IMG/VR virus record: IMGVR_UViG_3300042308_001511
Location: 124,001 to 188,000 of that record
Direction: 5' to 3' (one strand)
DNA length: 64,000 nt
Every line of letters starts with the position of its first letter. Position 1 is the first letter of the stretch. The notes beneath the pieces were generated by a model. The model was not told where the DNA came from and did no database searches. It worked only from the letters and a program-made list of their open reading frames with translations. Of this stretch, positions 7,600 to 28,175 are shown piece after piece. A program made the translations under genes and the position numbers.

Positions 7600-7813
7600 G
7601 AAAGATATGAGAAAGTTTTTGGTATTTGAGACAGAAAATGATCGTAAGAAAGTCGAGGTCACAAATTCATTTATATTTGAGTCGGAGTCGGAGATAAACC
7701 GGTTCAATAGCACCGGAGAGATATCAGATAGTGAGACAGGTCTTGCACTACTTGACAAGTTCCCGGTCTACATCGCAATGGTTAGACACATTCACATAAC
7801 CTTCGAGAAATGA
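7583..7813 (+). CDS. Hypothetical protein
   Basis: 76-aa ORF within the operon; true start may be the internal ATG (MRKFLV). Confidence 0.5.
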   Translation: MTQTYKKDMRKFLVFETENDRKKVEVTNSFIFESESEINRFNSTGEISDSETGLALLDKFPVYIAMVRHIHITFEK

Positions 7814-7977
7814 AAGACTACACACCTAGAGACCTTGAATACTTCACAGAGAAGCTCTGGTCCTCTGTAGGAATACCAGAAAGATACCTCGATGGAACGA
7901 AAAACGCAGATATGTTAGAGAGAATCTTAAAAAAGAGGAAAAGGATTAGTCGTATAAAGAGTTTGTGGAAAATATAA
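7810..7977 (+). CDS. 55-aa mini-protein: portal (gp20)-like fragment plus C-terminal tag
   Basis: Below the ORF-track cutoff; MKDYTPRDLEYFTEKLWSSVGIPERYLDGTKNADMLERILKKRKRISRIKSLWKI; ATGA overlap with the upstream gene. Confidence 0.55.
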   Translation: MKDYTPRDLEYFTEKLWSSVGIPERYLDGTKNADMLERILKKRKRISRIKSLWKI

Positions 7978-8010
7978 GCAAACTTTTGATAAGTATTTCA
8001 TATATCTTTT

Positions 8011-8184
8011 ATGAGTAAATTGAAGTTGGCAACATTGTGGATTTTCATTATTGGATTTTCAACGTCTTTATTTTGTCTGATGTTATCTGATAAAAATGAT
8101 ATTGCAGGGTGGTTTTTGGCTAGTTTCTATTCATTTATATGTGTCTATTATGCCACAAAAGAACTAACAAATAATAAAAAATGA
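8011..8184 (+). CDS. Small two-TM membrane protein
   Basis: 57 aa, MSKLKLATLWIFIIGFSTSLFCLML..; ATGA overlap with 8181. Confidence 0.5.
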   Translation: MSKLKLATLWIFIIGFSTSLFCLMLSDKNDIAGWFLASFYSFICVYYATKELTNNKK

Positions 8185-8492
8185 TTAAACACGAGATAAA
8201 AGTAGAGATGAAGGATTCAGTATCCTTACGCAATCTTATAGAATCTGCATATAATATGAACGGAGAAGAAGGAACTATAATTGGTAATGAACACAGATTA
8301 TTGGTAAATCCAGTTTTGGATGATGAACTTTTTCGTGTGCTTACTGGATTACATAATAGTACAGTAAAGGTTTTCAACACAGAAGTTATTGATGGAACTA
8401 TTAGATTTATGGTTTCTGAAAAATCAGGCGAAATAAATCTTTCACCAATATCTGTACGTTGTATATGTGAAGATAGATGGATATTTTATTAA
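8181..8492 (+). CDS. Hypothetical protein
   Basis: 103-aa ORF. Confidence 0.6.
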   Translation: MIKHEIKVEMKDSVSLRNLIESAYNMNGEEGTIIGNEHRLLVNPVLDDELFRVLTGLHNSTVKVFNTEVIDGTIRFMVSEKSGEINLSPISVRCICEDRWIFY

Positions 8493-8515
8493 TAAATATA
8501 TCTAAAATGTAAGTG

Positions 8516-8677
8516 ATGATAAACGACCTGCAGGACATACTGAGGACAGTCATATACGCGCCGCCACCTAATATAGCTAGTTTTGTACATTCATTTAATG
8601 TTATACCTACACGTGTATCAGTTCGAAAGGAGAAAGCACTTCAACTTTGGTCGGATATTAAAAAATCAACTCATTGA
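8516..8677 (+). CDS. 53-aa mini-protein: possible tail-sheath C-terminal fragment plus C-terminal tag
   Basis: MINDLQDILRTVIYAPPPNIASFVHSFNVIPTRVSVRKEKALQLWSDIKKSTH; preceded by AAATATAT. Confidence 0.45.
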   Translation: MINDLQDILRTVIYAPPPNIASFVHSFNVIPTRVSVRKEKALQLWSDIKKSTH

Positions 8678-10413
8678 GTTGATTTTTCTATTATCATTTC
8701 GAATTTTATCTGTCCACAATCAAAAACCCGAACTGCACCAAACTCTGACTCCATTATTTCTACTTCTGACCTGTCTGGATCATATCCGAGCTTAACCAAT
8801 TTCGATTTTTTCCAACGTTGTTTATTAACACGTCTTTTGTCTATTAACCAAGCCCAGTTTGGTTTAGTTACACTTTTCTCAATAAATCCAATTTTGTAAT
8901 ATAGATTACCGGTGGACCATGATAAATCGGCAAAAGTTATTATTCTTGTAGGTTTGTAAGTATTTATAAAATACTTTAGTAGTTTTGAGGCACCACCTAC
9001 AATACTATATCCCAATAAACTACAAAACCTGTTTAAGTTCCATTCCGTATCCAACATTTTATTCCTTCCTTCGAAGTGATCAAAGGACATAATAGAAACT
9101 AAAGCATCATTATGATAGAGACCTATTTTCACCGATGATGCGATTTTTCCCTGTATATGGTTTTCATCTAAGAACAACAATGCCTCTGACTTTTCAACTT
9201 CACGAACTTCACAATTCCTTGCCCATATCTTCGACCCTGAATTTAAACCTATCCAATTCTTTATCTGTGACTTAACTATTTCACATCTTTCAACCCAATC
9301 ATCCTCCCAAATATTAATAATACGTATTCCCTTCTCTTTAAAATATCTCAACTTATTTATGTGATAGTTACTATCTTTATACAATTCAGAATGCCAATAC
9401 AGACCATTAAATTCTAAACCCAAATTAATATCCGGTAGATAAATATCAATTTCCATTTTGGAACGGTAATTTTGAATAATCTCACCATCATAAACCGATG
9501 AAACGTATTCATATAATTCATCTTCTAAAACTGATGCAAATCTTTCGACCGGATTACAAACCGTGCATTGTGGTTTTGATATAGACTTACGAGCATGCCA
9601 TAAATGTGAATTTGTAATATAATTGTGACCTTTATCACAAAACATTTCATATTGTCCTTTTCCAGTGTAGGATACAAAGTTATTGTCCTGATTCAAAGTA
9701 GTTTTAGTAAGCCCTTTCCTATACCTATCAAAAATACCATCACGATATTCTTTTGATTTAGTATAGTTATCAACCCCATACTTATCCAAAGTAGTACGAA
9801 TAACCTTATCCCTTATATCTTTCGACTTCATAGGATGATTAACACCAATTTTATCTATAAGTGTCTTTTGTATGTTTTCCTTTATTATATCAGATTGAAA
9901 AGGATTTTCAACTCCCCAATTATTAAGTGTTGTTTCCCTTTTTTTGTCTTTTGCCCAATCAGTCTTCGATATGTTATCAACCCCATACTTATCTAGCATC
10001 TTTTCTCTAACTTTAAAAACCATATTGGTGTAATCGTATCCTTTACGTGATTCCGCAACATTTCTTTTTACTATATCAGACTTTGAAGGGTTATCAACCC
10101 CATATTTATCCATAGAAGTTTTTCTCAAACTCTCCATTTTTATAGAACTCAATTCAGGATCAGAATTAGAACATTTTTTAGAACAATATTCCCTATAACC
10201 TCTTGAAATTGATAAAAACTTTACATTAGAACCACACATCTTACAAGTCGGTCGTATATTATTATCTAAAAGGTAAATCTTTTCCGATAGCGTATCACCT
10301 TGTAAATTAGTAACATACATCCAAAGATTAGGTAAATTCTTTTCAACCCATGACTCTTTTACGGATGATTTACTTTTATAAATTATCAATTCCTCTAAAA
10401 CATTACTCTGCAT
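8671..10413 (-). CDS. Second Hef-like homing endonuclease, paralogous to 3767..5575
   Basis: KYGVDNP-type repeats, EIDIYLPDINLGLEFNGLYWHSE, ARNCEV..NHIQG..GGASKL; start taken at MQSN. Confidence 0.7.
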   Translation of the reverse strand: MQSNVLEELIIYKSKSSVKESWVEKNLPNLWMYVTNLQGDTLSEKIYLLDNNIRPTCKMCGSNVKFLSISRGYREYCSKKCSNSDPELSSIKMESLRKTSMDKYGVDNPSKSDIVKRNVAESRKGYDYTNMVFKVREKMLDKYGVDNISKTDWAKDKKRETTLNNWGVENPFQSDIIKENIQKTLIDKIGVNHPMKSKDIRDKVIRTTLDKYGVDNYTKSKEYRDGIFDRYRKGLTKTTLNQDNNFVSYTGKGQYEMFCDKGHNYITNSHLWHARKSISKPQCTVCNPVERFASVLEDELYEYVSSVYDGEIIQNYRSKMEIDIYLPDINLGLEFNGLYWHSELYKDSNYHINKLRYFKEKGIRIINIWEDDWVERCEIVKSQIKNWIGLNSGSKIWARNCEVREVEKSEALLFLDENHIQGKIASSVKIGLYHNDALVSIMSFDHFEGRNKMLDTEWNLNRFCSLLGYSIVGGASKLLKYFINTYKPTRIITFADLSWSTGNLYYKIGFIEKSVTKPNWAWLIDKRRVNKQRWKKSKLVKLGYDPDRSEVEIMESEFGAVRVFDCGQIKFEMIIEKSTQ

Positions 10414-10520
10414 AATTTTTATATATAAAAAAAGCCATTCCATCCGTGGCAGTGAAAAAAATAAAATAAGTAAAAACAAACCGCGTAAATTTTTATAAAT
10501 AACATAAATCTAAATAAGAA

Positions 10521-11480
10521 ATGAAAGAACATATATTAGAAGAAAATAAAAGCCGGTTCGTAATGTTCCCGATAAAGTACCACGATATCTGGGAAAAATA
10601 TAAGACTGCTGAACATTCGTTCTGGACGGCCGAAGAGATTGACCTTGCACAAGACTTAACGGACTGGAATGATAAATTGAACGATGATGAGAAACACTAC
10701 ATTAAAAATGTGTTGGCATTTTTTGCAGCATCAGATGGTATTGTTAACGAGAATTTGGCCGAAAACTTTCTTAAAGAAGTTCAGTATGCTGAGGCTAAGA
10801 GTTTTTACGGTTTCCAAATAGCAATGGAAAACATACACTCTGAGACCTACTCTCTTTTGATTGATACCTACATCAAAGACGACAATGAGAAGGATAGATT
10901 ATTCAATGCAATTGATACTGTTCCTTCTGTGAAGAAGAAAGCAGATTGGGCATTGAAATGGATTGAATCAGATTCATTTGCAGAGAGATTGATTGCGTTT
11001 GCTGCTGTCGAGGGTATATTTTTCTCTGGATCTTTCTGTTCTATCTTCTGGTTGAAGAAAAGAGGACTTATGCCAGGTTTGGCATTCTCAAACGAGTTGA
11101 TTTCACGTGACGAAGGACTACACTGTGAGTTTGCATGTTTACTACACAACAAATACGTACAGAACAAAGTTAGTCAAGAGAGGATTACTCAGATTATCAT
11201 TGAGGCAGTCGAGATTGAGAAAGAGTTCGTAACTGATTCATTACCTGTATCTTTGATTGGTATGAATTCTAAACTTATGCAACAATATATCGAATTCGTT
11301 GCTGACTACTGGTTAGTGGAATTAGGTTGTAAGAGAGTTTATAATACGGACAACCCGTTCGATTTTATGGATATGCTTTCGTTACAAAACAAAGGAAATT
11401 TTTTCGAGAAGAGGGTTTCTGAATACCAAAAGCCAAAGGACAGAGAAATTGATTTCACTAGTCTTGACGAAGATTTCTAA
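10521..11480 (+). CDS. nrdB: Ribonucleotide reductase class Ia beta subunit
   Basis: [45 protein letters not shown]. Confidence 0.97.
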
Positions 11481-11485
11481 TAATT

Positions 11486-11509
11486 AGGGACTAAAAAGTC
11501 CCTTTTTTT
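11486..11509 (+). terminator. Intrinsic terminator
   Basis: agggact-aaaa-agtccct followed by a T-tract. Confidence 0.65.
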
Positions 11510-11517
11510 ATATAAAA

Positions 11518-12501
11518 ATGGTTAAAAAAGAGATTGTTTGTGTGATGGCTCATGCAACAAATGAAGAGAAAAGGACACTTCTACGTAAGTGTGTGCAATC
11601 TATTCGTTCACACGGATACGAAGTTATGATATGTTCGCATATTAATGTTCCTGACGATTTGATTGAAATATCTGACTACTTTGTACACGGTAAGAATAAT
11701 CCTATAATAACATATGACGAGTATGAAACTATAGGTGGTGGAATATTTTATTGGCAAGACTTTCCACAATATTATATGAATAAAAAGGTAGACATAAACC
11801 ACGGGCTGGCGCACCTAAGACTTATGCTTCGTGGTGCATCAATTGCTAACATAGAAGGGTATGATGTTATACATCTCATAAACTATGATTATATAATAAA
11901 CGATGTTACGGTTTTGTCAAATGCGTCAACTAAACTTGATACAAAAGATGCATACTTTTTTAGTAGGTCCAATTCTGACACAATTATAACCGGTATGATG
12001 TCTATGCGTGTTGATAGTTTACTTAAAAACTACGGACACATATTGAGTAAGCAAGATTATTGTGTCTATGGTATATCAATATTCGAAGACCTTTTCTTAC
12101 ATATCACAAAGGAGAGTGGTATGTTATATCACATAGAAGAAAGTTCTAATTTAGATGACAGAGTTGAACAGGACCTAATCAATATAACGGATGCGTATGG
12201 TCTTTACAATTGTGAAGATACGAATATTAGGATAGTTCCGTGTATTGATGATTTTGGTCAATATTACTTATTGATATCAGTTGATCAGGAACTGGAAGAA
12301 AACTACTTGAATATATACCACCGGGGAAGGTATTATAGTGTTAGTGCATCAGGCACACAATTTATTGAACTATCTGATATGCTAGAAAATGGTATAATAG
12401 TTACTCTTAGTAAAGGCCAGGTCTGCCTAAGAATCGACTCGAAAAGCAACATATCACGATGTGTAATAAAAGACACACAAATCGTGACAAAACTTATTTG
12501 A
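11518..12501 (+). CDS. Glycosyltransferase-like protein, paralogous to 50132..51148
   Basis: GT-A-like N-terminus; HGLAHLR and IHLINYD match HGLSVLR and FHRIEVD of the paralogue. Confidence 0.4.
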   Translation: MVKKEIVCVMAHATNEEKRTLLRKCVQSIRSHGYEVMICSHINVPDDLIEISDYFVHGKNNPIITYDEYETIGGGIFYWQDFPQYYMNKKVDINHGLAHLRLMLRGASIANIEGYDVIHLINYDYIINDVTVLSNASTKLDTKDAYFFSRSNSDTIITGMMSMRVDSLLKNYGHILSKQDYCVYGISIFEDLFLHITKESGMLYHIEESSNLDDRVEQDLINITDAYGLYNCEDTNIRIVPCIDDFGQYYLLISVDQELEENYLNIYHRGRYYSVSASGTQFIELSDMLENGIIVTLSKGQVCLRIDSKSNISRCVIKDTQIVTKLI

Positions 12502-12503
12502 CT

Positions 12504-13409
12504 ATGAAGATGAATGTACTTTCACTATTTGATGGCATATCGTGTGGTAGAATAGCACTCGAAAGAGCCGGTATACCTTGTAACTATTGGGCAAGTGAGA
12601 TTGATGAAAAGGCGATTGAAGTTTCTGCAAAAAACTGGCCAGAAATAGTTCATATGGGTGATGTCACCGAACTATACGATCAAATTGTAAACTTACCTAA
12701 GATAGATTTGCTTATTGGTGGTAGTCCTTGTCAATCATTTTCTAATGCTGGTAAAGGAGAAGGTTTCCAGGGTAAGAGTGGTTTGTTTTGGGAGTTTGTA
12801 AGGATAAAAGAAGCTACTGAACCGAGATACTTTATGCTTGAAAATGTAAGTATGAAGCGTGAGTGGAGAGACCAAATAAGTGAGGCACTTGGAGTTGAAC
12901 CAGTGATGATTGATAGTAAAATCGTGAGTGCACAGAACCGAAAACGATTATACTGGACAAATATACCATTGAAGGATACCATTGAAGATAGAGGACTCTA
13001 CTTAGATGATGTTGTTGAGTGGGATGTAGATCCAAAATACTGGTTACCTCAGAAGAATACAGATATTCTAAATAGGAAAGTAGATATGAAGGGAGCACCA
13101 GATTTATGTGCAATTGATGTATATAACAAAAGGTATAAGACGGATGGAAGGTGTCAGACAATTACACACCCATGTCATAATACAATTAGGCTTTGGCAAG
13201 ATGGTAAGTTTAGGAAGTTCACACCACTTGAATATGAGAGATTACAGAACGTTCCTGAAGGATATACCGCAGGTCATTCTGACACAATTAGAGGTGGCTT
13301 CTTGGCAAATGGATGGACAGTGGATGTTATATCATATATATTTGGTCAAATGTTGGAAGATATGAAGAAGGTTTATGAAAATCAAAAGTCATTTCAATAT
13401 CCCATTTAG
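12504..13409 (+). CDS. DNA (cytosine-5) methyltransferase
   Basis: LSLFDGISCG, GGSPCQSFS, LENV, QNRKRLYW, ANGW. Confidence 0.93.
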   Translation: MKMNVLSLFDGISCGRIALERAGIPCNYWASEIDEKAIEVSAKNWPEIVHMGDVTELYDQIVNLPKIDLLIGGSPCQSFSNAGKGEGFQGKSGLFWEFVRIKEATEPRYFMLENVSMKREWRDQISEALGVEPVMIDSKIVSAQNRKRLYWTNIPLKDTIEDRGLYLDDVVEWDVDPKYWLPQKNTDILNRKVDMKGAPDLCAIDVYNKRYKTDGRCQTITHPCHNTIRLWQDGKFRKFTPLEYERLQNVPEGYTAGHSDTIRGGFLANGWTVDVISYIFGQMLEDMKKVYENQKSFQYPI

Positions 13410-13949
13410 TAAATAATCTCTATTATCCTCTTTTGATTTGTGAAACCAGATTGTTTTTTGATAAGCTTTTCGTAACTCTTTCCACCCTGGAAGTGCGTCC
13501 CAATGTCCGTAGACGTGAACTGAGTCGTCCCAAATTATTATCCTCTCAATTTCGGTCTGCCTCTCGCTCGGCCAGTCTGTGTAAGTTTTTTCATTACCGT
13601 TATTATCGGTGTACGTAAACTCATACTCTCGCTTGTTCTCCCAACTTCTCCTGACGTTGTAGAAGTCAATCTCAAGTGCCATATCCAAAAGTCGGTCGTT
13701 TAGGTATATCGCAACTCTCGGATAGTGTAAAACTGCATACGATCCAGATTTCCTGTCATGCATCCACTCGATGTGTTCATAAAGGAAGAATTGGCCTTTT
13801 TTTACCTTACTACCGATGAGGTCGTATTTGTCGGTCTTCAGGTCGAATCCGTTAAAAGTCCACTCTTCGCCTCTATTATAATCAGGAAGTTCTGACGTTG
13901 GATATTTTGATACGATAAGTTCTGTTATATTCATTTCTTTTTTTTTCAC
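13389..13949 (-). CDS. Hypothetical protein with C-terminal tag
   Basis: Ends RDYLLNGILK. Confidence 0.65.
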   Translation of the reverse strand: MKKKEMNITELIVSKYPTSELPDYNRGEEWTFNGFDLKTDKYDLIGSKVKKGQFFLYEHIEWMHDRKSGSYAVLHYPRVAIYLNDRLLDMALEIDFYNVRRSWENKREYEFTYTDNNGNEKTYTDWPSERQTEIERIIIWDDSVHVYGHWDALPGWKELRKAYQKTIWFHKSKEDNRDYLLNGILK

Positions 13950-13958
13950 GAATTTAAA

Positions 13959-13989
13959 AAGAAAATCCCGTTTTCACGGGATTTTTCTT
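13959..13989. terminator. Intrinsic terminator downstream of dnaK
   Basis: aaaatcccg-ttttca-cgggatttt. Confidence 0.6.
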
Positions 13990-14003
13990 AGGTATATTTT
14001 CTA

Positions 14004-15902
14004 CTACTTCTCATTTACGTCTTCGAAGTCTACATCTTCTACCGTGCCATCACTGGTTGGTTGATCATTTGTATTTGTGTTTTCGTTTGTACTCTCTTGA
14101 TACAATCTTGTACTGATTGGTCCCCAAGTTTCGTTCAACGCTTCAATAGAACTATCAATTGCCGCAACATCTGCATCTGCGTGAGCTTTCTTAAGAATAT
14201 CTAACTTTTCGTTGATTGCATTTGTATCTTCTGTAGTTAGTTTTTCAGAAAACTCTTTGATTTGTTTTTCTGTTTGGAAAATCATACTATCTGCAGCATT
14301 TAGTTTTTCAACCTTCTCTTTTTCGAGTCTGTCTGCTTCCGCGTTAGCTTCTGCGTCTGCTTTCATTTTCTCAATCTCTTCTTTAGAAAGTTGCGATCCA
14401 CCCTCAATTCTGATAGAGTTTTGTTTACTAGTTGCTTTGTCTTTAGCAGAAACTGAAAGTATGCCATTTGCATCTATGTCAAAGGTTACTTCTATCTGCG
14501 GGATTCCTCTAGGTGATGGCATAATTCCATCGAGGTTGAATCTTCCGAGTGATCTGTTGTCTTTGGCCATTGCTCTCTCACCTTGTAAAACGTGTAACTC
14601 TACTGATGGTTGATTATCTGCCGCAGTTGAGAAAGTCTCACTTTTCTTTGTAGGGATTGTAGTATTTGCTTCAATCAACTTTGTGAAAACTCCACCCATT
14701 GTTTCGATTCCTAATGATAGTGGTGTTACGTCTAATAATAACACATCTGTAATACCACCTGTCAATACAGCACCTTGAATTGCAGCACCCAATGCCACAA
14801 CTTCGTCTGGATTTACTGAACGGTTAGGTTTTTTACCTACATATTGTTCGATTGCATCCTGAATTGCAGGAATTCTAGTAGAACCACCCACCAAAATTAC
14901 TTCATCGATATCTGATGGTTTCAAGCCTGCGTTTTTAAGTGCAGATTTTGCACATCCGATTGCTCTGTCCACAAGTTTTGCGGTCATTTGTTCGAACTTT
15001 GCTTTAGTTAATTTCTTCACAAAGTGTAAAGGAAGTCCGTCTTTTGCAGTGATATATGGAAGGTTGATTTCAGACTCAGAAGTAGATGAAAGTTCAATTT
15101 TTGCTTTCTCCGCAGCATCCTTCAACCTTTGAAGTGCCATAGGATCTTTTGATAAATCCATTGAGTTCTCTGATTTGAACTCAGTTATCATCCAATCAAT
15201 AATTGCGTTATCAAAGTCATCACCTCCTAAGTGAGTATCACCATCAGTAGATTTTACTTCAAAAACACCATCACCAATTTCCAATACCGAAACATCGTGT
15301 GTACCACCACCGCAGTCAAATACTAATATTTTAGATTCATTGTCTTTTTTGTCTAAACCATATGCAAGTGCTGCTGCTGTAGGTTCGTTGATAATTCTTT
15401 CTACTTTCAAACCAGCAATCTCACCTGCTTCAATAGTAGCAGTTCTTTCTGCATCACCAAAGTATGCAGGAACTGTAATAACTGCTCGGGTAACTTCGTA
15501 TCCTAAATAGTCTTCTGCGGTTTTTTTCATTTTTTGTAGAATCATCGCAGAAATCTCTTGTGGTGTGTATTCACGTCCATCAATGTTAACAACCGGAACA
15601 TTACTAGCAGATTTCTTTACTTCATAAGGAACTCTTCCAACTTCGTCGGTACAAACAGAGTGGTCTTTTCCGATGAATCTCTTAATTGAGTAGATTGTGT
15701 TTTTTGGGTTTGTTACTGCCTGTCTTTTTGCAGGGTCTCCAATTTTTCTATCGTTGTTAGAGAAAGATACGATTGATGGTGTCGTTCTTCTACCCTCTGC
15801 GTTGGAGATTACTACTGGCTCCCCGCCTTCTACCACTGCGACGCACGAGTTTGTTGTCCCGAGGTCAATTCCGATGATTACATCTTTTTTACTCATAGTC
15901 AT
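14004..15902 (-). CDS. dnaK: Chaperone DnaK (Hsp70)
   Basis: [32 protein letters not shown], acidic VEDVDFED tail. Confidence 0.98.
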
Positions 15903-15947
15903 TTATTTTTATTTTTATTTTTACTTATCAAAAACTACACCAAAACA

Positions 15948-16022
15948 AAAACCTGACATAATTTTTATTTGTTGTCAGGTTTTATGACATAATATTCTAT
16001 TTGTTGTCAGGTTTTATGACAT
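15948..16022. repeat. Two 25-bp direct repeats, each containing TGTCA-N7-TGACA, plus an inverted half-copy, upstream of dnaK
   Basis: tatttgttgtcaggttttatgacat at 15966-15990 and 15998-16022; aaaacctgaca at 15948-15958. Confidence 0.85.
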
Positions 16023-16060
16023 TTCACAAATATTATTGTTGTTTATTTTATTTTATTTTC

Positions 16061-16068: not shown

Positions 16069-16085
16069 TTTTTAAAAATATCTAA

Positions 16086-18867: not shown

Positions 18868-18888
18868 ATCTTATATATTATTCTTTTA

Positions 18889-19200: not shown

Positions 19201-19208
19201 ATTCTAAT

Positions 19209-19961
19209 TTATTTTTTGTAATATGGTTCTAAATAAATCTTTATCGCCTTGTTTATACTGGCATCCGAGGCTTCGAGATCTTCCACGTCAAGATCTTGTA
19301 AATCATTCTTTATTCTTTGTCTGACATCGCCCAAACTCATGTAAGTTAAGTTTACATTAGACTCATCTGAGAATAGTTTCAAAAACATTACGTTGTGTGA
19401 CTCTGATCCAAATGGTATATTAATGTTTTGGTCGACTATCGGATAAAGTGTTTTTAGTATGTTCAGAACTCTCTGTGTCTGCGTTGCTTCGGGTCCATTT
19501 GGGAGCTCCTGGAACGATGAAACTCTTTTCGGTAGTGAGAATGCCATCCTGATGGATATGAGTGCTTCTACGTCGTCTAATAACCTTTCCAGTTTTGTCT
19601 CTACATCTTCGTCTGATTTGAAGCTCACTGTCTTCTGATCAACCAGGTGCATATTTGCATTGTTCGCGAATGAATATTGTTTGGCGTATAGTATTACCGT
19701 GACGTAAGGTTTGAGACCGTCACCTTCGCAAAGTCTGATGATATTACACAATCTCTCTGTTACCTGTTCTACTTTTCCTTCGAGTAAACTGATGTGCTCG
19801 GACTTGTTCTCAAACGGTGTATCTGACATAATCTCAACATCAAGTCTTTCACCTTCAACATAAACGTTGGATGTGTACCCGTCAGGTAGATCATACATAA
19901 CCTCCTTTGTTGTATTCAGTATGTAGTCCATCCCACCAAAGCTCTCGAATCTCTTTATCAT
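19209..19961 (-). CDS. Hypothetical protein with N-terminal tag
   Basis: Starts MIKRFESF. Confidence 0.65.
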   Translation of the reverse strand: MIKRFESFGGMDYILNTTKEVMYDLPDGYTSNVYVEGERLDVEIMSDTPFENKSEHISLLEGKVEQVTERLCNIIRLCEGDGLKPYVTVILYAKQYSFANNANMHLVDQKTVSFKSDEDVETKLERLLDDVEALISIRMAFSLPKRVSSFQELPNGPEATQTQRVLNILKTLYPIVDQNINIPFGSESHNVMFLKLFSDESNVNLTYMSLGDVRQRIKNDLQDLDVEDLEASDASINKAIKIYLEPYYKK

Positions 19962-20020
19962 GTTGTATATATTAAAAAGTTTTAGTATATTTCTGGGAAA
20001 GGAAGTGATATGGGTGTGTA

Positions 20021-20054
20021 TGAAAAAACCTCTCGTTTCTGAGAGGTTTTTTCA
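20021..20054. terminator. Intrinsic terminator, potentially bidirectional
   Basis: tgaaaaaacctctc-gtttct-gagaggttttttca, perfect 14-bp inverted repeat. Confidence 0.7.
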
Positions 20055-20058
20055 ATTT

Positions 20059-20760
20059 TTAGTTAGTAGAAAATTTCATAGTATTTGTAAAATAATCTTT
20101 ATTCTTACTTACCCAACCAGTTTCATTTAATTCATCTACCCATTGTTGTAGAGTAATCATTTTCATTGGATTTTTAAAAGAAACCAAATCTTCTTGTGGA
20201 ACTTCTGAAATATCTTCATCTATAATTATTTCTGAATCATCAATCGGATTCCATTTTTGTTGTGGAATAGAATACTGACTATTCTTCATAGTTAGTACAG
20301 GAACATCTTTTGTTAAATCAAATTCATAATCTGATTTCTTAACACTAGAACCAGGTTTCAAACCGATTGTGAAATTATTCACAATATCATCTTTTGCCAT
20401 AATAGATAGCCAAGAAATTGTATCCGGAACTTGTAGAGTTTTAGCTTTCTCGTCTGTTAACTCAACCAATACTTCAGAATTTTGCAAAAGCACAATTTTC
20501 GCTAACCCTGGAGTATATTGTAAGTAATCTATTGGGTTACTCATTTCTTCTTTACCTGGATTAGCACCACCAAGATAATGTATGTTATACAAATTACCCT
20601 TTGGTTGTATTGCATTTTTAGTTAAAAATTCTTGCATAACTTTACCTTTTTCGGATTTACCTTTAACTAAAGTTTCTATTTTTTTAAAAATATTTTCATT
20701 TATGCCAAGTATCCATTTCTTGTCATCTATGAATTTTTCGTACAATTTTATGTTCTTCAT
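20059..20760 (-). CDS. Hypothetical protein with N-terminal tag
   Basis: Starts MKNIKLYEKF. Confidence 0.65.
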   Translation of the reverse strand: MKNIKLYEKFIDDKKWILGINENIFKKIETLVKGKSEKGKVMQEFLTKNAIQPKGNLYNIHYLGGANPGKEEMSNPIDYLQYTPGLAKIVLLQNSEVLVELTDEKAKTLQVPDTISWLSIMAKDDIVNNFTIGLKPGSSVKKSDYEFDLTKDVPVLTMKNSQYSIPQQKWNPIDDSEIIIDEDISEVPQEDLVSFKNPMKMITLQQWVDELNETGWVSKNKDYFTNTMKFSTN

Positions 20761-20881
20761 AAGTATTTTATTTTTCGTATATATTATATTTCACTGTCAA
20801 AAAACGTATATTTGTAGATATTTCGAATATTATTTTTTTTGTATATTCTATTTCTGAAACTAAAATCGTATATTTGTTAAT

Positions 20882-21799
20882 ATGAACATAGGATACTGCT
20901 GCATACCTCTCGGTTGTAACGAGGGAAAGAAAAAGAAAGACCACCTACTCGTAAACCGAGGTATGGTGAAGAAAACGTTTGAAGCAAAGGGACTTCCCTA
21001 CGCATCACAACTTATCGTTGAGAACCTTAAAGACACACTGAAGGTTCTACAATATAACCTGACACAAGGTATCATGGTTTATCGTATGTCATCCGACTCG
21101 TTCCCGTGGATGAGTGAGTACCGATTCGAAGACCTACCAGACTTCACCAGTATCAAAAGACAACTCGAGATAATCGGAAAGTTCATAAAGGACAACACCA
21201 TACGTGTTAGTTACCATCCAGGTCCCTTTAATGTTTTGGCAAGTGAAAACGAATCGGTGGTCATAAAGACTATTGATGAGTTGAACAAGCACGCGGAACT
21301 TATGGATCTTATGGGTCTTGACCAGACAAGACAATATCCAATCAACATACACATAAACACAACCAAGCCGACCAGAGAGGACGCTGCTCAGAGATTCGTT
21401 GATAAGTTCGAACTACTTTCAGATTCGTGTAAGGCCAGGTTAACATTAGAGAACGACGATAGTCCTAACCAATACTCGGTGAAAATACTAAACGATTTGG
21501 TTTATTCTAAAATAGGTATTCCAATTGTGTTTGATCAGCACCACTTCAACTATGGACCACAAGATCAGAGTATGGAAGAAGCTCTTAGATTGGCACTTTC
21601 TACATGGGGTGATATTAGACCACTTACACATATGAGTTCGCCTAAGACTCATGAGGATTCAAAAGGTAGGGCTACTGCTCATGCAGACTACATATATGAA
21701 AAGATTGAGACGTTCGGTTTTGAATTTGATGTAGAAATCGAGGCTAAGGCGAAAGACCTTGCAGTTATAAAATATAGAGAACAATACCTAAAATCATAA
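20882..21799 (+). CDS. uvsE: UV damage endonuclease
   Basis: IGYCCI, YRMSSDSFP, HPGPFNVL, LENDD, FDQHH, AHADY, EAKAKD. Confidence 0.92.
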   Translation: MNIGYCCIPLGCNEGKKKKDHLLVNRGMVKKTFEAKGLPYASQLIVENLKDTLKVLQYNLTQGIMVYRMSSDSFPWMSEYRFEDLPDFTSIKRQLEIIGKFIKDNTIRVSYHPGPFNVLASENESVVIKTIDELNKHAELMDLMGLDQTRQYPINIHINTTKPTREDAAQRFVDKFELLSDSCKARLTLENDDSPNQYSVKILNDLVYSKIGIPIVFDQHHFNYGPQDQSMEEALRLALSTWGDIRPLTHMSSPKTHEDSKGRATAHADYIYEKIETFGFEFDVEIEAKAKDLAVIKYREQYLKS

Positions 21800-21801
21800 T
21801 T

Positions 21802-22008
21802 ATGTTAAATACAATCGCTTATATAGCATCTGCGTTTATACTATTTTCTTTCACGTTGAAGGATCAGAAAAAATTACGTATATTCAACTCGATAGGTGCC
21901 ATACTATTCATTTTCTACTCGTATATGAAAGCAGATTATCCAGTTGTATTCATTAACTCTGCAATTGTGTTAATAAACCTTTACTACATTATATTCAATA
22001 AAAAATAG
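21802..22008 (+). CDS. Small inner-membrane protein (YgjV-like)
   Basis: Three hydrophobic segments; LRIFNSIGA motif. Confidence 0.6.
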   Translation: MLNTIAYIASAFILFSFTLKDQKKLRIFNSIGAILFIFYSYMKADYPVVFINSAIVLINLYYIIFNKK

Positions 22009-22010
22009 AT

Positions 22011-22517
22011 ATGAAATTATTTGACATATTCAAAAAGAAGAAGCCTGTACAGCAGGAGACTATTCCGAACAAAAAGAAGAAACTGGTGCTCGACAAGGAG
22101 ATGGATTTTCCTGAGTTAGAGAAGTTCGACGAAGATAGATATCTAGCAGACACCTTCGAAGATGTGTTCCGGGCGATACGTTACGACGGTTGGAAGCGCG
22201 AGTTCACGAGTTACGGCGAGATGCACTTCTCGAAGGATCGCGTCCAGGTGAAGATACACTTCTCGGACTGGAGGACGTTCTACATAAAGAGGATCGAGTT
22301 ATATTCCGGATACACTACCTTCATATACAAGGACGAACTGGACGTGGACCACTATAATATGTTCTACGAGATCTACCGTGACTTCGTCATTAAACAGAAC
22401 GAGGTAAAGAAGAATAACATTGAGAAGAGTATGGCACAGATACGCAACGCACTGGGTAAGGACGTACTAAGGGACAGTAAGATTGATATGCTACTGAACT
22501 CGGATGATGTTGAATAG
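22011..22517 (+). CDS. Hypothetical protein with C-terminal tag
   Basis: Ends RDSKIDMLLNSDDVE. Confidence 0.65.
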   Translation: MKLFDIFKKKKPVQQETIPNKKKKLVLDKEMDFPELEKFDEDRYLADTFEDVFRAIRYDGWKREFTSYGEMHFSKDRVQVKIHFSDWRTFYIKRIELYSGYTTFIYKDELDVDHYNMFYEIYRDFVIKQNEVKKNNIEKSMAQIRNALGKDVLRDSKIDMLLNSDDVE

Positions 22518-22672
22518 TATAATAGTAAAATAAAAGAACATATGGCTGATAGTATTATGATTATGGAGTTCGCAATAAGGGATTTCATCGATGGGCAAGA
22601 GTTAGTTGAGTCGTTAGAAGATAGAAAGACAGAAGTTTCTGCAAGTCTTTACGGAATTGATTTAGTTGATAT

Positions 22673-23554
22673 ATGGAACTAATGGAACAAAGTAGACCAA
22701 TCAACGTTCTTTCACTATTCGACGGAATGTCTTGTGGACAGATTGCTATTAACAAACTCGGAATAAAGTACGACAACTACTTCGCTTCTGAGATTGATAA
22801 ATGGGCTATGCAGATAACGAAGAAGAACTACCCAAACACGATCCACATTGGGGACGTAAGGGAAGTTAAGGGTACGGACCTTCCAGAAATAGATCTTCTA
22901 ATCGGCGGTAGTCCTTGTCAGTCATTTTCGAATGCAGGTAATGGAAAGGGATTTGAAGGTAAGAGTGGAATCTTCTGGGAGTATGTTAGACTACTCAAAG
23001 AAGTCAAACCGAAATACTTTATGCTTGAAAACGTAAGGATGAAAAAGGAATGGCAGGATGTCATCACCGAAGCATTAGGAGTTGAACCAATTATGATAAA
23101 TTCCAGCCTCGTGAGCGCACAGAACCGTCCTAGGTTTTACTGGACAAATATACCAGGTATAGGACAACCAGAAGATAAAGGATATGTAACACGAGACATT
23201 CTTGAAAAAGACGAGGATGTAGATACCGCATATCAACTCACAACAACAGCTCTAGCTTATATGGATAGAGAAAGAAACGGAAAGTCTAGGTGGAACTACC
23301 ACAAAAATCCATTAGACGGAAAAGCAGCTTGTGTAGTTGCAGGTTATGCCAAAATGGCAGGATTTGCAGTTTTAGATTACAGAAACTTAGGAAAACCATG
23401 TAGGAGATTAACACCGAGAGAGTGTGAGAGGTTACAAACGGTCCCTGATGACTACACAGAAGGAGTTTCAAAGACACAAAGATATTTAATGATTGGTAAC
23501 GGATGGACAGTAGACGTTATCGCTCACATACTATCATACATGAAATTAGACTAA
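22673..23554 (+). CDS. DNA (cytosine-5) methyltransferase, second paralogue
   Basis: LSLFDGMSCG, GGSPCQSFS, LENV, QNRPRFYW, IGNGW. Confidence 0.93.
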   Translation: MELMEQSRPINVLSLFDGMSCGQIAINKLGIKYDNYFASEIDKWAMQITKKNYPNTIHIGDVREVKGTDLPEIDLLIGGSPCQSFSNAGNGKGFEGKSGIFWEYVRLLKEVKPKYFMLENVRMKKEWQDVITEALGVEPIMINSSLVSAQNRPRFYWTNIPGIGQPEDKGYVTRDILEKDEDVDTAYQLTTTALAYMDRERNGKSRWNYHKNPLDGKAACVVAGYAKMAGFAVLDYRNLGKPCRRLTPRECERLQTVPDDYTEGVSKTQRYLMIGNGWTVDVIAHILSYMKLD

Positions 23555-23558
23555 AAAT

Positions 23559-23819
23559 ATGCCAGAAAGAAGTGATAACTACGTGGATTTAGTTCCTCAC
23601 CACAGAAGAAAGGGAAATGATTTCTCAAATGATGCCGAATTAGCATTCAAAGATTATATAGCTGATGTAACCACCGTTAAAGATTTGAAGTACTTCACAA
23701 ATAAAGAACAGTATTTTACGCGTGCTCTGAAGGATGCTTACATCTCAGGTTGGAACCAACATAAATACGTTAGTGGAAAGATGTACACCATTGAAGAGGT
23801 GAAAGAAATAGTGAATTAA
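23559..23819 (+). CDS. Hypothetical protein
   Basis: 86-aa ORF in operon. Confidence 0.55.
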   Translation: MPERSDNYVDLVPHHRRKGNDFSNDAELAFKDYIADVTTVKDLKYFTNKEQYFTRALKDAYISGWNQHKYVSGKMYTIEEVKEIVN

Positions 23820-23824
23820 AGAAT

Positions 23825-24007
23825 ATGGAACAAACCGCAGTAGAATGGTTGGCTGAAGAGTTTAGAGATACAATCCTTAAAGAATATGGAGAAGTAAGAT
23901 TTTTAGAACTTGTTGAATATGCCAAAGAAATGGAAGAACAAAGGTTAGAGAAGTTGAAAGACTTTGATACATGGAAAGAATGGAAGAATAAAACTAAAAC
24001 AACATAA
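23825..24007 (+). CDS. Small phage protein (QTAVEWL-type)
   Basis: MEQTAVEWL..AKEME. Confidence 0.55.
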   Translation: MEQTAVEWLAEEFRDTILKEYGEVRFLELVEYAKEMEEQRLEKLKDFDTWKEWKNKTKTT

Positions 24008-24008
24008 T

Positions 24009-24548
24009 ATGGCAAACTATTGTTCATTTGACACAAACATCAGTGGAGAACCAGAAAAACTGACGGAACTCTACAAAAGACTAGGTGATGACGGACGTAT
24101 AGGATTCGACGACTATGAAAAGTTGTTCGACGAGGCTGCACCTGAAGGATTCAATTGGGGATCCAAATGGATCGAGTACAGTGTGAGCTATGGTGAAGGT
24201 CAAGACTGGATGTCAATCATCGGAGATACTGCTTGGTATCCCGCATCCGGACTGTGGCAGAGAATCTCAGAAAAGTACGAAACATCAGTAGACACAACAT
24301 ACTCAGAACCAGGAGGAAACTTCGCAGGAAAGGATAGTTGGGAAAACGGTGAGAAGACATTCAGTGAGGAGATGACATACACAGAACATCTCTACTACAA
24401 TGATTACGAATACTTTTGGGACAACATCACCAATGAATGTGTTGGGTTGGATCTCGAAGATGTGATTGACGGACTCGGATCCATCTACGAAAAGATGAGT
24501 GACACAGAGAAACAGAGGATTGTGGAAATACACACCGCGGAGAACTAA
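24009..24548 (+). CDS. YubB/DUF1281-like ferredoxin-fold protein
   Basis: NWGSKW, GDTAWYP, YSEPGGNFAG. Confidence 0.6.
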   Translation: MANYCSFDTNISGEPEKLTELYKRLGDDGRIGFDDYEKLFDEAAPEGFNWGSKWIEYSVSYGEGQDWMSIIGDTAWYPASGLWQRISEKYETSVDTTYSEPGGNFAGKDSWENGEKTFSEEMTYTEHLYYNDYEYFWDNITNECVGLDLEDVIDGLGSIYEKMSDTEKQRIVEIHTAEN

Positions 24549-24549
24549 T

Positions 24550-24585
24550 AAAAAAAGAGATTGTTTCTACAATCTCTTTTTTTTT
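24550..24585. terminator. Intrinsic terminator
   Basis: aaaaaagagattgt-ttct-acaatctctttttt. Confidence 0.65.
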
Positions 24586-24739
24586 CTATATTTGTATAAA
24601 AAATATAATATGAACAACCATAGAATAAATATGAACAAGATAAAAGTTCCTAAAAGATACGCAAAACAATACAATATAGATAGTTACCTAAAATCTTTTC
24701 TAAGTGAACTACGTATAAGTCTCTGTTGATATATAAATT

Positions 24740-25180
24740 ATGGTAACACAAAGAGATTTCAATAGGGACTTACTCAGGAAGGGTGAGCTTATATGCAGAA
24801 ACAGCCAGTTCTGTAAAGGAAAAGAAGTAGGTATACACAATCGTATGTTTGGTGGTGATTTACTACAAGAATTAGACTCCGTTTGTGCAGTTTTTGCGGC
24901 TGAAGTCTGTGACACTCCATGGATTGTAACCAAATCAATGAATGTTGAGTTTGTAAGTGAAGTGAGACCGAACCAGATTTACAAAACATACGTTGGTATA
25001 AAAAAAATTGGTGGTACTTCTATAACATTAGTCGCTGAGATACGAACTCATTCAGTAGATACTGAAAAAGAGAAACTTGCTATAAAATGTGAGACGGTTT
25101 TTGTACGTATAAACGAATATGGAGAGGCTATAAAGATAAACGACAATGTTCGTACAAACTACCCAGAACTTTCTAAATGA
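24740..25180 (+). CDS. Hotdog-fold acyl-CoA thioesterase (YciA-like)
   Basis: MFGGDLLQELD, VTKSM, IGGTSI, VFVRI. Confidence 0.8.
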   Translation: MVTQRDFNRDLLRKGELICRNSQFCKGKEVGIHNRMFGGDLLQELDSVCAVFAAEVCDTPWIVTKSMNVEFVSEVRPNQIYKTYVGIKKIGGTSITLVAEIRTHSVDTEKEKLAIKCETVFVRINEYGEAIKINDNVRTNYPELSK

Positions 25181-26262
25181 AATATGACTATATAATTGCA
25201 GGTGCCGGTTTCTTCGGTTCTATATGTGCAAGTGAACTTAATAAAAGAGGTAAAAAGGTACTTGTTGTTGAGAGTAGAAATCATATAGGTGGTAATTGTT
25301 TTACCGAAAGTGTAGATAATATCAATATACATACTTATGGACCTCATGTTTTTCATACGTCAAATGAGATGGTTTGGGAATGGATAAACCAATATGTTGA
25401 ATTCAATGACTTTAAATTGAATGTTGTTGCCAATTATAAAGGAGATGTTTACTCATTACCATTCAATATGTGGACTTTCTCAAAGATGTGGGGTATATCT
25501 ACACCAGAGGAGGCACGTAAAATAATTGATGAACAATCGAAGGATATATTGGATCCAAAAAACTTGGAAGAGCAAGCTATAAAGTTAGTTGGTAAAGACA
25601 TCTACGAAAAATTGATAAAAGGTTATACAACTAAACAATGGATGAAAAGTCCTGATTTACTTCCTAAGGAAATAATAAAAAGATTACCTGTTAGATTCAC
25701 ATATGATAACAATTACTTCTATGATAAATATCAAGGAATACCGATAGGTGGTTATACACAAATATTTGAAAAACTATTAGATGGTATAGAAGTTAGACTG
25801 AATACCGATTATTTAAAGGATGATATGCCCGAACATGATAAGGTAATATTTACTGGACCAATAGATAAGTTTTTCAATTACAAATATGGTCAATTAGAGT
25901 ATAAAACAACTAGGTTTGAACATATTAGACTTGATACTACCAATGCACAGGGTACTGCTACGGTTAACTATACAGATGTGGAAACTCCTTATACGAGAAC
26001 GATTGAACATAGACATTTTGAAAAAAGTGAAAGTGATGTCACCTGGTTTACGTATGAATATCCACACCCTTATAAGCCAGACGAAACTGAACCATACTAC
26101 CCTGTTAATGATACTTCGAACAACGAGATATACACAAGATATACACAAGATGCAGAAAAAATAAAGGATCGTGTATTGTTCGGTGGTAGATTAGGTGAGT
26201 ATAAATACTATGATATGCATCAGGTTATCGAGCATGCTCTTAATTTTGTTAATAAGATATAA
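25177..26262 (+). CDS. glf: UDP-galactopyranose mutase
   Basis: GAGFFG, HIGGNC, YGPHVFHT, GYTTKQW, RLPVR, EPYYP, GRLGEYKYYDMH. Confidence 0.96.
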   Translation: MKYDYIIAGAGFFGSICASELNKRGKKVLVVESRNHIGGNCFTESVDNINIHTYGPHVFHTSNEMVWEWINQYVEFNDFKLNVVANYKGDVYSLPFNMWTFSKMWGISTPEEARKIIDEQSKDILDPKNLEEQAIKLVGKDIYEKLIKGYTTKQWMKSPDLLPKEIIKRLPVRFTYDNNYFYDKYQGIPIGGYTQIFEKLLDGIEVRLNTDYLKDDMPEHDKVIFTGPIDKFFNYKYGQLEYKTTRFEHIRLDTTNAQGTATVNYTDVETPYTRTIEHRHFEKSESDVTWFTYEYPHPYKPDETEPYYPVNDTSNNEIYTRYTQDAEKIKDRVLFGGRLGEYKYYDMHQVIEHALNFVNKI

Positions 26263-26264
26263 TT

Positions 26265-26486
26265 ATGATTTATATTTATAAACCACGTAGTGAATGGCAC
26301 AGAAGATTTGATTTAACTGAAAATAAATCATATGACTGTGAATGGAATGGTCAAATGGTTTATTCATCTGATGGTATTTACTTTAAGTTGATTAGTGATT
26401 TAGACAAAGAGATTGAGGTTCATGAAAGTCATTTCATACCACTTGATAAATTTCGAGAAAATAAATTAAAAGAAATAGGGAAATGA
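26265..26486 (+). CDS. Small hypothetical protein with C-terminal tag
   Basis: Ends RENKLKEIGK. Confidence 0.6.
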   Translation: MIYIYKPRSEWHRRFDLTENKSYDCEWNGQMVYSSDGIYFKLISDLDKEIEVHESHFIPLDKFRENKLKEIGK

Positions 26487-26525
26487 AAAAAGTCGGCGAA
26501 TACCGACTTCTTTTCTAACAAAAAA

Positions 26526-26756
26526 CTATAGTCCTATATCACGAAACCTTTTTTCCCTAATACGTTCTATAAATTCTGCCTTAGTCTCCAAATTTATCTG
26601 TTCGGTATTGTAGAAGCCACCTTTAGTTGATGTTATACTATATAGATGACCGACGGTATCAATATTTGCCTCGCCTACTATACCAATCCAGTTAGTAGGT
26701 CCATATGGTGAGTTATATGTAAATGTGGCACCAATTGGCCAGTCATCTGGCATCAT
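26526..26756 (-). CDS. Small hypothetical protein with C-terminal tag
   Basis: Ends REKRFRDIGL. Confidence 0.6.
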   Translation of the reverse strand: MMPDDWPIGATFTYNSPYGPTNWIGIVGEANIDTVGHLYSITSTKGGFYNTEQINLETKAEFIERIREKRFRDIGL

Positions 26757-27394
26757 AATCCAAGTTCATTTAGTTTCAATTCTCTCAATACACTTTTATC
26801 AGGTTCCCAACCATAAAGATAAGTGTGATTCGGATTTACACCGACTGCATTCCATTTATCTATCAATTCTTCGGATTGGTAATTGATATGATTATTGTTA
26901 CTAATACCAATAAAACCTGTTGTTGTAGGTTCAAAACCATCCGCGAAAAAATCCTGTATGAAACAAGAGAACTCTTCGAGTATTATTTGTGCATGATCCT
27001 CTTCACGTCGTTCATCGTCATCGTCATCAAACCTTTGCTGTTTCATTCTTCCGAGCTTCACCAATTCATCTATTACGTCGCCGATAACGTCCGAGTTTCC
27101 GAATGGTCTTTTATAACCCATATTGGTTCCCTCATCACCTTCTTCTATATAGATTGTAGATAATAATGCCATATGAACATCTATGTTCTCTGAGTATTTT
27201 TCTACAACAGATTTTTTTGGCTTTGCTGTGATTGCCAACATCTGCATCTCTGTACTAAGATTTGTATCCCATGTAACCATATGTGAGTAATACGAACTTT
27301 CGGTTACACATGATTCTACACTACGTATCTCGTCGAGTTGTTTCTGAGTTATATTTATTCGTTCACCGGTTTTAGGCATATAAAGGTTTCTCAT
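26753..27394 (-). CDS. Hypothetical protein with C-terminal tag
   Basis: Ends RELKLNELGL. Confidence 0.65.
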   Translation of the reverse strand: MRNLYMPKTGERINITQKQLDEIRSVESCVTESSYYSHMVTWDTNLSTEMQMLAITAKPKKSVVEKYSENIDVHMALLSTIYIEEGDEGTNMGYKRPFGNSDVIGDVIDELVKLGRMKQQRFDDDDDERREEDHAQIILEEFSCFIQDFFADGFEPTTTGFIGISNNNHINYQSEELIDKWNAVGVNPNHTYLYGWEPDKSVLRELKLNELGL

Positions 27395-27544
27395 AATTAT
27401 TCTTTTAGTTCATTGGCTTTCATCTCTAAGTATTCATCCATAGAAAATCCTTCTGGAAGATTTTCTAAATCATATCCATATTCGTTTTGTAATTCTATAA
27501 CTAAGTCTTTGATGCGTCCCATATCTTTTCGTTTTTACAAATAT

Positions 27545-27575
27545 AAAAAAACCATCCAAATTGGATGGTTTTTTT
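27545..27575. terminator. Intrinsic terminator, potentially bidirectional
   Basis: aaaaaaccatccaa-a-ttggatggtttttt. Confidence 0.65.
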
Positions 27576-27585
27576 CGAAAATTTA

Positions 27586-28011
27586 TTAGTCTATCGTTTC
27601 GTATTTTATAATTTCTATTCCGGCATTTCTTAGAAAGTCTAAACCAGTGGTATCTTTATAGTCCTCACCATACACAAGTCTCTTTATCCCAGATTGTAGT
27701 ATGAGACGTGAGCAATCCCTACAGGGACTGTGTGTTTGGTATATTGTAGCACCATCACAAGACTGGCCGTTACGTGCACACTTAAGTATTGCATTGGCTT
27801 CACCGTGGATCACTTCCCATTTAGTCTCACCATTATCAAGTTCGCAAGAATTATCGAACCCGGTTGGTGTCCCATTGTAACCATCAGAGACAATCATTCC
27901 GTTTTTGACTATGAGTGCACCCACTTGTTTTCGTGTGCAGTGAGAAAGCTTGGCCCACTCTCTGGCCATTCTTAGATATGTTCTGTCGTATCTTTGCTGC
28001 TTATCCCCCAT
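27586..28011 (-). CDS. dCMP deaminase
   Basis: SHCTRKQVGA, GYNGTP, HGEANAI, SPCRDC. Confidence 0.93.
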   Translation of the reverse strand: MGDKQQRYDRTYLRMAREWAKLSHCTRKQVGALIVKNGMIVSDGYNGTPTGFDNSCELDNGETKWEVIHGEANAILKCARNGQSCDGATIYQTHSPCRDCSRLILQSGIKRLVYGEDYKDTTGLDFLRNAGIEIIKYETID

Positions 28012-28175
28012 AATTCTTTTATTTTCTCTTTACGTTTTTCACTTTTGAATAGATCCTGCCATTTGTCTGCGATGAAACTACTGACCACAAGATGGTTCGC
28101 ACTACCACGGTTCGCTGATTTGGCAATTGTGTTGCTCGCTTGTAGTATTTTCCCAATCAGGTCCTTCTGATTCAT
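27972..28175 (-). CDS. 67-aa mini-protein: major capsid (gp23)-like fragment plus C-terminal tag
   Basis: LIGKILQASNTIAKSANRGSANHLVVSS followed by RKEKIKELW; 1-nt overlap with the nusG stop. Confidence 0.55.
   Translation of the reverse strand: MNQKDLIGKILQASNTIAKSANRGSANHLVVSSFIADKWQDLFKSEKRKEKIKELWGISSKDTTEHI

Follow-up and report, generated by a model that had tools for sequence, protein, structure and literature searches.

MicroProteins of plants and animals, such as the Id proteins and LITTLE ZIPPER, are small proteins that retain a single interaction segment from a larger one; they act on transcription-factor dimers. Among phages, the satellite proteins SaPI CpmB, P4 Sid and PICI Ccm redirect the capsid assembly of a helper phage, and Gol, a short conserved stretch of the phage T4 major capsid protein (MCP), is the ligand of the Lit protease and triggers a host defence. 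Proteins are also directed to protein shells by short peptides, including the N-terminal capsid-targeting sequence of T4 and the cargo-loading peptides of encapsulins. T4 additionally encodes gp24, a vertex paralogue of the MCP gp23 (PMC9958956). Here we describe three small open reading frames (ORF1, ORF2 and ORF3, referred to as mini-ORFs; Table 1) in a window of 64,000 nucleotides (nt), positions 124,001 to 188,000 of the 344,083-bp contig IMGVR_UViG_3300042308_001511, which is from a huge T4-related phage. Two of these, ORF1 and ORF3, each appear to be a diverged copy of a single short segment that is highly conserved in a core virion protein, with a basic amphipathic tail behind it. An original prediction, made from the letters of the window, had proposed an architecture in which a single fragment of a core virion protein is joined to a short C-terminal tail, and this architecture holds for ORF3, with a piece of capsid protein, and for ORF1, with a piece of portal.

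ORF1 and ORF3 resemble microProteins in that, at the sequence level, they keep one segment and the other domains are absent; they differ in that their parents are capsid and portal proteins and a short C-terminal tail is added. With the satellite proteins they share a contact element common with a virion or scaffold protein and, as we propose here, competition at an assembly interface. However, those proteins are encoded by a satellite and act on its helper, whereas the mini-proteins are the phage's own, are much shorter, and correspond to internal segments of the MCP and portal. T4 gp24 is likewise a capsid-gene derivative that has become a separate gene, but it has a full-length fold that builds vertices, compared to the approximately 40 residues kept in ORF3. 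Gol is a region inside gp23 and not a gene of its own, and it lies in another part of the protein than the segment present in ORF3. The targeting peptides share with the mini-ORFs a short terminal motif that is common to otherwise unrelated small proteins, but they have no sequence likeness to the mini-ORF tails, and the T4 signal is N-terminal.

A capsid-like segment in ORF3

No MCP or portal gene lies within the window, and scans of the 344-kb source contig returned neither; the MCP of L163 (IMGVR_UViG_3300042308_001616, 248,751 bp), another large contig of this sample that bears the capsid gene of the clade, and genes of the uncultured phage LR756502 served as stand-ins for the phage's own structural genes. 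The likeness of ORF3 to T4 gp23, as originally proposed, is borne out. Gp23 is the top Pfam family for ORF3, an MCP family also ranks first in PHROGs, and the Gp23 match is repeated in 17 of the 21 family members. ORF3 shares 40% identity over 40 amino acids (aa) with the L163 MCP (BLASTP, E=2e-6), and profile-profile comparison with the MCPs of the clade (hhalign) aligns 43 columns, with P-values of 7.9e-5 and 5.5e-5. The corresponding mini-ORF of LR756502, which is 59 aa long and 42% identical to ORF3, in turn matches the MCP of LR756502 itself (E=4e-6). Two further searches were free of any prior choice of ORF: with the ORF3 profile, the MCP comes first among all ORFs of a 40-kb structural region (E=1e-4), and when an MCP profile is run against the 1282 segments of the window's six-frame translation, the best match is ORF3 (E=0.0025), followed by one at E=0.3.

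Against the Pfam Gp23 model (PF07068) ORF3 scores 16.1 bits, which is under the gathering threshold of 24.4, and its orthologue in another contig, L283, scores 26.3 and is above it; the family link is thus real, with the window copy itself falling below. Only a small part of the 376 model positions is covered (Table 1), and at 67 aa, compared to Gp23 relatives of 560–610 aa, ORF3 is a fragment and not a capsid protein. Within the segment, six of the ten columns that are invariant in the ORF3 family are identical to the MCP. By alignment the copied segment corresponds approximately to residues 352–389 of T4 gp23, and from the layout of the HK97 fold we infer that it represents a helix-strand-helix of the A domain; in T4, the subunits within a capsomer contact each other through this domain (PMC9958956).

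It could be argued that the mini-ORFs are ordinary orphan small proteins that resemble virion proteins only through an artefact of selection, many ORFs having been scanned. The Pfam E-values of 0.002–0.008 are per protein and would fail a correction for all ORFs by all families, and a PDB profile search with ORF3 did not return T4 gp23. However, the reverse search over the window segments puts ORF3 first, two divergent members of the ORF3 family each match their own MCP, the L283 orthologue passes the curated Pfam cut-off, and ORF2, tested alike, yields scattered unrelated matches; we regard chance as quite improbable. A possible likeness between T4 gp67 and gp23 was not found in the literature searched, and is not used here.

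A portal-like segment in ORF1

The proposed likeness of ORF1 to the gp20 portal stands as a local similarity to T4-type portals and fails for the portal of its own clade. Portal_T4 (PF07230) is the only Pfam family matched by ORF1, with 17.2 bits compared to a threshold of 22.9 and over a short part of the 433 model positions (Table 1), so that this is local similarity only; the match is repeated in five of the seven family members, and the top PHROGs family is a portal family. Every annotated tblastn match of ORF1 in the phage collection lies within, or at the edge of, a portal gene, and ORF1 shares 42% identity over 31 aa with gp20 of cyanophage S-SSM7. As a cross-control, ORF1 matches three T4-type portals and no MCPs, and ORF3 matches six MCPs and no portals. 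A PDB profile search with ORF1 gave only the T5 portal pb7 (E=0.38). The segment corresponds approximately to residues 360–390 of T4 gp20, where the stem helix runs into the tunnel loop, an element that links the stem and wing of the portal (PMC9958956).

ORF2 and the C-terminal tails

ORF2 had been likened, more weakly, to the gp18 tail sheath, and we find no basis for this. There is no Pfam or PHROGs match at E<=10, and the aligned stretch is not conserved among the ORF2 homologues, being replaced in P0039 and P0041. A tblastn search returned scattered unrelated genes and no sheath; the clade's own sheath was not located and hence was not directly compared. ORF2 has neither a family match nor a longer parent in these searches, and its homologues are all small.

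The tag R-x-x-[KR]-x-x-x-L-W, which was said to unite the three mini-ORFs, is common to ORF2 and ORF3 and is loose in ORF1, and it is not one equal tag. It occurs three times in the six-frame translation of the window, only in the three mini-ORFs, compared to 0.34 occurrences expected from shuffles, and the ORF1 homologues have DIY or DIH where LW stands. A tighter motif, [RK][KR][EKQ]K[IALV]x[EKQR][LI][WF], is present in the window in ORF2 and ORF3 only (two matches versus 0.01 expected), and the tails of these two ORFs match each other with an hhalign P of 5.4e-5. A proteome-wide basic tag was not found within the window. LR756502 has a looser variant of the motif in two small ORFs. We also note a 53-aa ORF of LR756502 (L191, 39027–39188) that ends FRKDKIRKIL and is a weak match common to the profiles of all three mini-ORFs; its middle resembles a short capsid-protein stretch (GRKN). 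The idea that the tail motif is merely the initiation region of the next gene fits ORF3, in which the downstream ATG lies inside the LW codons; it does not hold in ORF2, nor in L283, in which the next gene is a further mini-ORF.

Conservation of the mini-ORF genes

All three mini-ORFs lie where the original prediction placed them, with ORF3 on the minus strand, which it had omitted. The homologues of each are all small and form 28 homologous clusters for ORF3 (59–76 aa), seven for ORF1 (55–61 aa) and three for ORF2; for ORF2, an exhaustive search gave two further small homologues and one tandem-repeat artefact. In the relatives, ORF1 has a constant position behind a cREC_REC gene and a 68-aa ORF, and ORF2 precedes nrdB. 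The order of NusG-like gene, ORF3 and dCMP deaminase gene is found in all of the relatives fetched and also in L283 and LR756502, with an HNH endonuclease gene between the NusG-like gene and the mini-ORF in LR756502. Ratios of nonsynonymous to synonymous divergence (dN/dS; Nei-Gojobori method, with synonymous sites near saturation) are 0.06–0.2 for ORF3, 0.07–0.18 for ORF1 (divergent pairs) and 0.11–0.37 for ORF2. Purifying selection across relatives is therefore found for all three ORFs, and with their conservation as small ORFs at fixed positions this agrees with the earlier claim that they are not random debris.

Coupling of two of the mini-ORFs to their neighbours through stop/start overlaps had also been proposed, and we find this for ORF1 and ORF3. 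The ATG of ORF1 overlaps the stop of an upstream 76-aa ORF (ATGA), and that of ORF3 overlaps the stop of the NusG-like gene (TAATG). The final 40 nt of ORF3 (27972–28011, minus strand) overlap the dCMP deaminase gene in a different frame, beyond which a terminator scan identifies a terminator-like hairpin (27545–27575). In the last 14 codons of ORF3 the synonymous divergence (dS) is 0–0.14, compared to saturation upstream, and this near-stop of synonymous change points to dual coding with the start of the deaminase gene. Gene callers on the relatives are split as to that start, giving proteins of 127 or 141 aa, and the scarcity of synonymous change in the overlap supports the upstream one.

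Endonuclease genes flank the arrays and differ between relatives, and one sits directly upstream of the LR756502 mini-ORF, as might be seen if the mini-ORFs were debris from homing-endonuclease traffic or from broken duplications. This is extremely improbable in view of the strong purifying selection, reading frames that are intact in dozens of relatives, and synteny that is fixed with or without an endonuclease gene. Pseudogenes and recombination debris were likewise ruled out by the dN/dS values of 0.06–0.37, the intact frames and the fixed position in relatives. As judged from these comparisons, chance and debris are both rejected for ORF3 and are unlikely for ORF1.

Related designs in other huge phages

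A pattern derived from the ORF3 family also retrieved small ORFs in other huge-phage contigs. In L283 (2501–2834) a NusG-like gene is followed by two adjacent mini-ORFs of 62 and 50 aa, both of which end RK[EK]KI[KR]KLF, i.e. in the tighter motif. The first of these is the ORF3 orthologue; the second aligns, at the expected place, with the start of the prohead protease at a non-significant E of 0.12, and its only Pfam match is a sub-threshold one to EF-hand.

The five adjacent ORFs of a tandem array in L284 (Table 1) match MCP residues ~461–496, 12–54, 554–589, 564–581 plus 363–400, and 82–150, with E-values down to 5e-15; the last ORF also repeats residues 105–150. The acidic tag with which all five end, DP[YF]GEE.W, is present in many copies on each contig of LR756501-like phages, frequently at the C-terminal end of a small protein, and at least 120 stretches carry it in this clade. 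Its codons vary synonymously, which indicates that the peptide is the conserved thing. There are 143 distinct tagged segments in 80 fetched loci (L336–L415), which include, beyond L284, three more acidic-tagged segments with MCP pieces and one with a portal piece. An MCP piece of the ORF3 type is found in both settings, joined to the basic tail in the present clade and to the acidic tag in the other. A piece of a virion protein with a clade-specific C-terminal tag appears, from these alignments, to be a wider class in huge phages. No description of the design, or of either tag, was found in the literature searched.

A 167-aa ORF in the window is a weak candidate for a further MCP-derived protein. 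It aligns with MCP residues 422–495 with 27% identity over 74 aa (E=9e-4; hhalign P=3.2e-4), and its LR756502 orthologue matches the MCP of LR756502 (E=2e-4); it has no Pfam or PHROGs family.

The presence of the acidic tag on many proteins per genome in the LR756501-like clade raises the question of whether such tails target small proteins to the assembling head, as components of the prohead core or as internal cargo, with the capsid-like piece docking on the shell or scaffold. One tagged ORF is located directly after an MCP gene (L036), and T4 heads contain several small core proteins (PMC9958956, PMC9026906). However, the basic motif is on two ORFs only in the window, the genes lie outside the head module, and no consistent prohead-protease cleavage motif is evident by eye, all of which make such a role rather doubtful.

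Another explanation is that the pieces are of capsid and portal descent and have been exapted to an unrelated present role, as for example if ORF3 works together with the NusG-like factor to control transcription. In every relative, and across ~42% identity, translation of ORF3 is coupled to that of the NusG-like gene, and ORF1 no longer resembles its own portal. Yet most residues conserved within the ORF3 family are identical to the MCP, and the same MCP piece is found with the other tag and other neighbours in L284 and L380, which argues that the piece, and not the NusG context, is the constant. Exaptation seems somewhat unlikely.

Genome context

Within the phage collection, the source contig is closest to two uncultured phages, LR745206 and LR756502, with genomes of 634–642 kb and 73% identity in topoisomerase protein. 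L163 is probably the same phage as the 344-kb contig; the two together would give a genome of ~590 kb, close to those of the relatives. The gene content of the window is one of replication and nucleotide metabolism, with ribonucleotide reductase, T4-type topoisomerase II and dCMP deaminase, and it also encodes a NusG-like factor, a phosphoenolpyruvate (PEP) carboxykinase and DNA methylases. The topoisomerase II subunit genes (36809–38662 and 40908–42248, both plus strand) are separated by ~2 kb of opposite-strand ORFs. There are two auxiliary metabolic genes, coding for a full-length ATP-dependent PEP carboxykinase (29702–31309, minus strand) and a UDP-galactopyranose mutase (25177–26262, plus strand).

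In the relatives, the series that contains the small-gene array runs cREC_REC gene, 68-aa ORF, ORF1, 103-aa ORF, ORF2 and nrdB, with homing-endonuclease genes variable around it. The relatives' version of the array is without the 57-aa ORF, a predicted membrane protein (8011–8184, plus strand) that lies between ORF1 and the 103-aa ORF in the window; in the relatives fetched these two abut. Two DUF7487-repeat proteins of ~600 aa are encoded at 3767–5584 and 8671–10479 (both minus strand), and a Mom-like region is present in one of them. An HNH-endonuclease-like protein is encoded at 51667–53259 (plus strand). These genes are mobile, because GIY-YIG and other endonuclease genes of the relatives sit elsewhere in the same array.

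Table 1. Coordinates of the mini-ORFs, their segments and associated genes (window positions unless another contig is named).
Feature	Position	Strand	Remarks
ORF1, 55 aa	7810..7977	+	Portal-like piece and basic C-terminal helix
Portal-like segment of ORF1, residues 8-38	7831..7923	+	Pfam Portal_T4 positions 285-310, E=0.0023
ORF2, 53 aa	8516..8677	+	Small protein with basic tail motif, no identifiable parent
Tail motif RKEKALQLW of ORF2	8624..8650	+	Homologues keep RKEK..Q[LI]W
ORF3, 67 aa	27972..28175	-	Capsid-like piece and basic tail motif
MCP-like segment of ORF3, residues 2-42	28050..28172	-	Pfam Gp23 positions 222-254
Tail motif RKEKIKELW of ORF3	28008..28034	-	LW codons TTATGG contain the dCMP deaminase ATG
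NusG-like gene	28175..28738	-	Translationally coupled upstream partner of ORF3; Pfam NusG and KOW
dCMP deaminase gene	27586..28011	-	Overlapping downstream partner of ORF3; Pfam dCMP_cyt_deam_1
Candidate further MCP-derived protein, 167 aa	17790..18293	-	Weak; second-best match of MCP profile in window, E=0.3
Co-directional small-gene array	7174..8492	+	cREC_REC gene, 76-aa ORF, ORF1, 57-aa membrane ORF, 103-aa ORF
cREC_REC gene	7174-7599	+	Stand-alone cyclic-phosphate processing receiver domain; heads the small-gene array; kept in relatives
Tandem array of five adjacent ORFs, each a different MCP piece	L284 2501-4230 (IMGVR_UViG_3300042261_000762)		All end DP[YF]GEE.W

Discussion

We favor the interpretation that ORF1 and ORF3 act in a microProtein-like manner, mimicking an interface and competing for virion-protein contacts, and we give this a probability of roughly 0.35. 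The copied segment would bind where its counterpart in the full-length protein makes contact, on either a neighbouring subunit or an assembly partner, and would in this way compete with capsomer and portal-ring assembly or set its timing, in the phage's own particles or in those of a co-infecting phage. The tail may provide a common second contact, serving as an adaptor or in targeting or turnover. We prefer this interpretation because the copied segments are relevant to assembly in their parents and are the best-conserved part of the mini-proteins. The sequence features of microProteins, namely small size, one interaction segment and the absence of other domains, are present in ORF1 and ORF3, and not in ORF2, which has no parent.

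Several observations weigh against interface mimicry. First, the AlphaFold single-chain models are helical hairpins of moderate confidence (pLDDT 65 and 71), and Foldseek gave no match with either model. Secondly, the Pfam scores of the window's own ORFs are under the gathering thresholds. Thirdly, the mini-ORF genes are in operons of nucleotide metabolism and transcription, outside the head module. Lastly, ORF1 has no match to the portal of its own clade (hhalign P=0.32; BLASTP E=23), in which the motif has diverged, and this makes self-regulation of the portal by ORF1 doubtful; we note also that the very low E-value of ORF1 with a three-portal profile is inflated, because those portals came from ORF1's own matches.

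The divergence of ORF1 from its own portal takes on another meaning if the pieces and tags form a modular kit for interference at the protein level, aimed at co-infecting phages or at host sensors of these pieces. All pieces would then be linked through the tag to a single shared effector, carrier or degradation route, and ORF1, which is like foreign T4-type portals and unlike its own, could be a weapon to which its owner is immune. We consider this conceivable, if somewhat unlikely.

The original prediction read the mini-proteins as possible immune decoys, or as agents that might poison or tune the assembly of competing phages. As decoys, they would resemble the regions of portal and capsid that host sensors read, and would titrate or jam those sensors early in infection. 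Consistent with this, each copied segment ranks among the best-conserved motifs of its parent, ORF1 is closer to generic T4-type portals than to its own portal, and ORF1 and ORF2 lie within a variable accessory array, near the cREC_REC gene and mobile endonuclease genes. In addition, one member of the L284 array duplicates an MCP region whose aligned counterpart in T4 gp23 contains the Gol peptide read by the Lit protease. However, Avs and CapRel sensors read folded domains, and a helical piece of 30–40 aa is unlikely to mimic a folded domain, the models being bare helical hairpins; a mimic of a trigger peptide could also activate a sensor instead of blocking it. No match to a defence or anti-defence family was obtained, and no description of such decoys was found in the literature searched. 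A decoy function thus seems doubtful.

Small phage ORFs are usually annotated as 'hypothetical', and those described here are a subset with a readable design, an interface segment with a shared tail, that is under selection and is repeated in several giant-phage lineages. If the preferred interpretation of competition at assembly interfaces is true, the mini-proteins would represent a new level at which head assembly is controlled or contested, and would be a natural source of short capsid- and portal-binding peptides. If they are instead decoys, they would reveal how a phage responds to the sensing of its conserved virion proteins. In both cases, profiles of virion proteins offer a systematic way to look for further members of the class.

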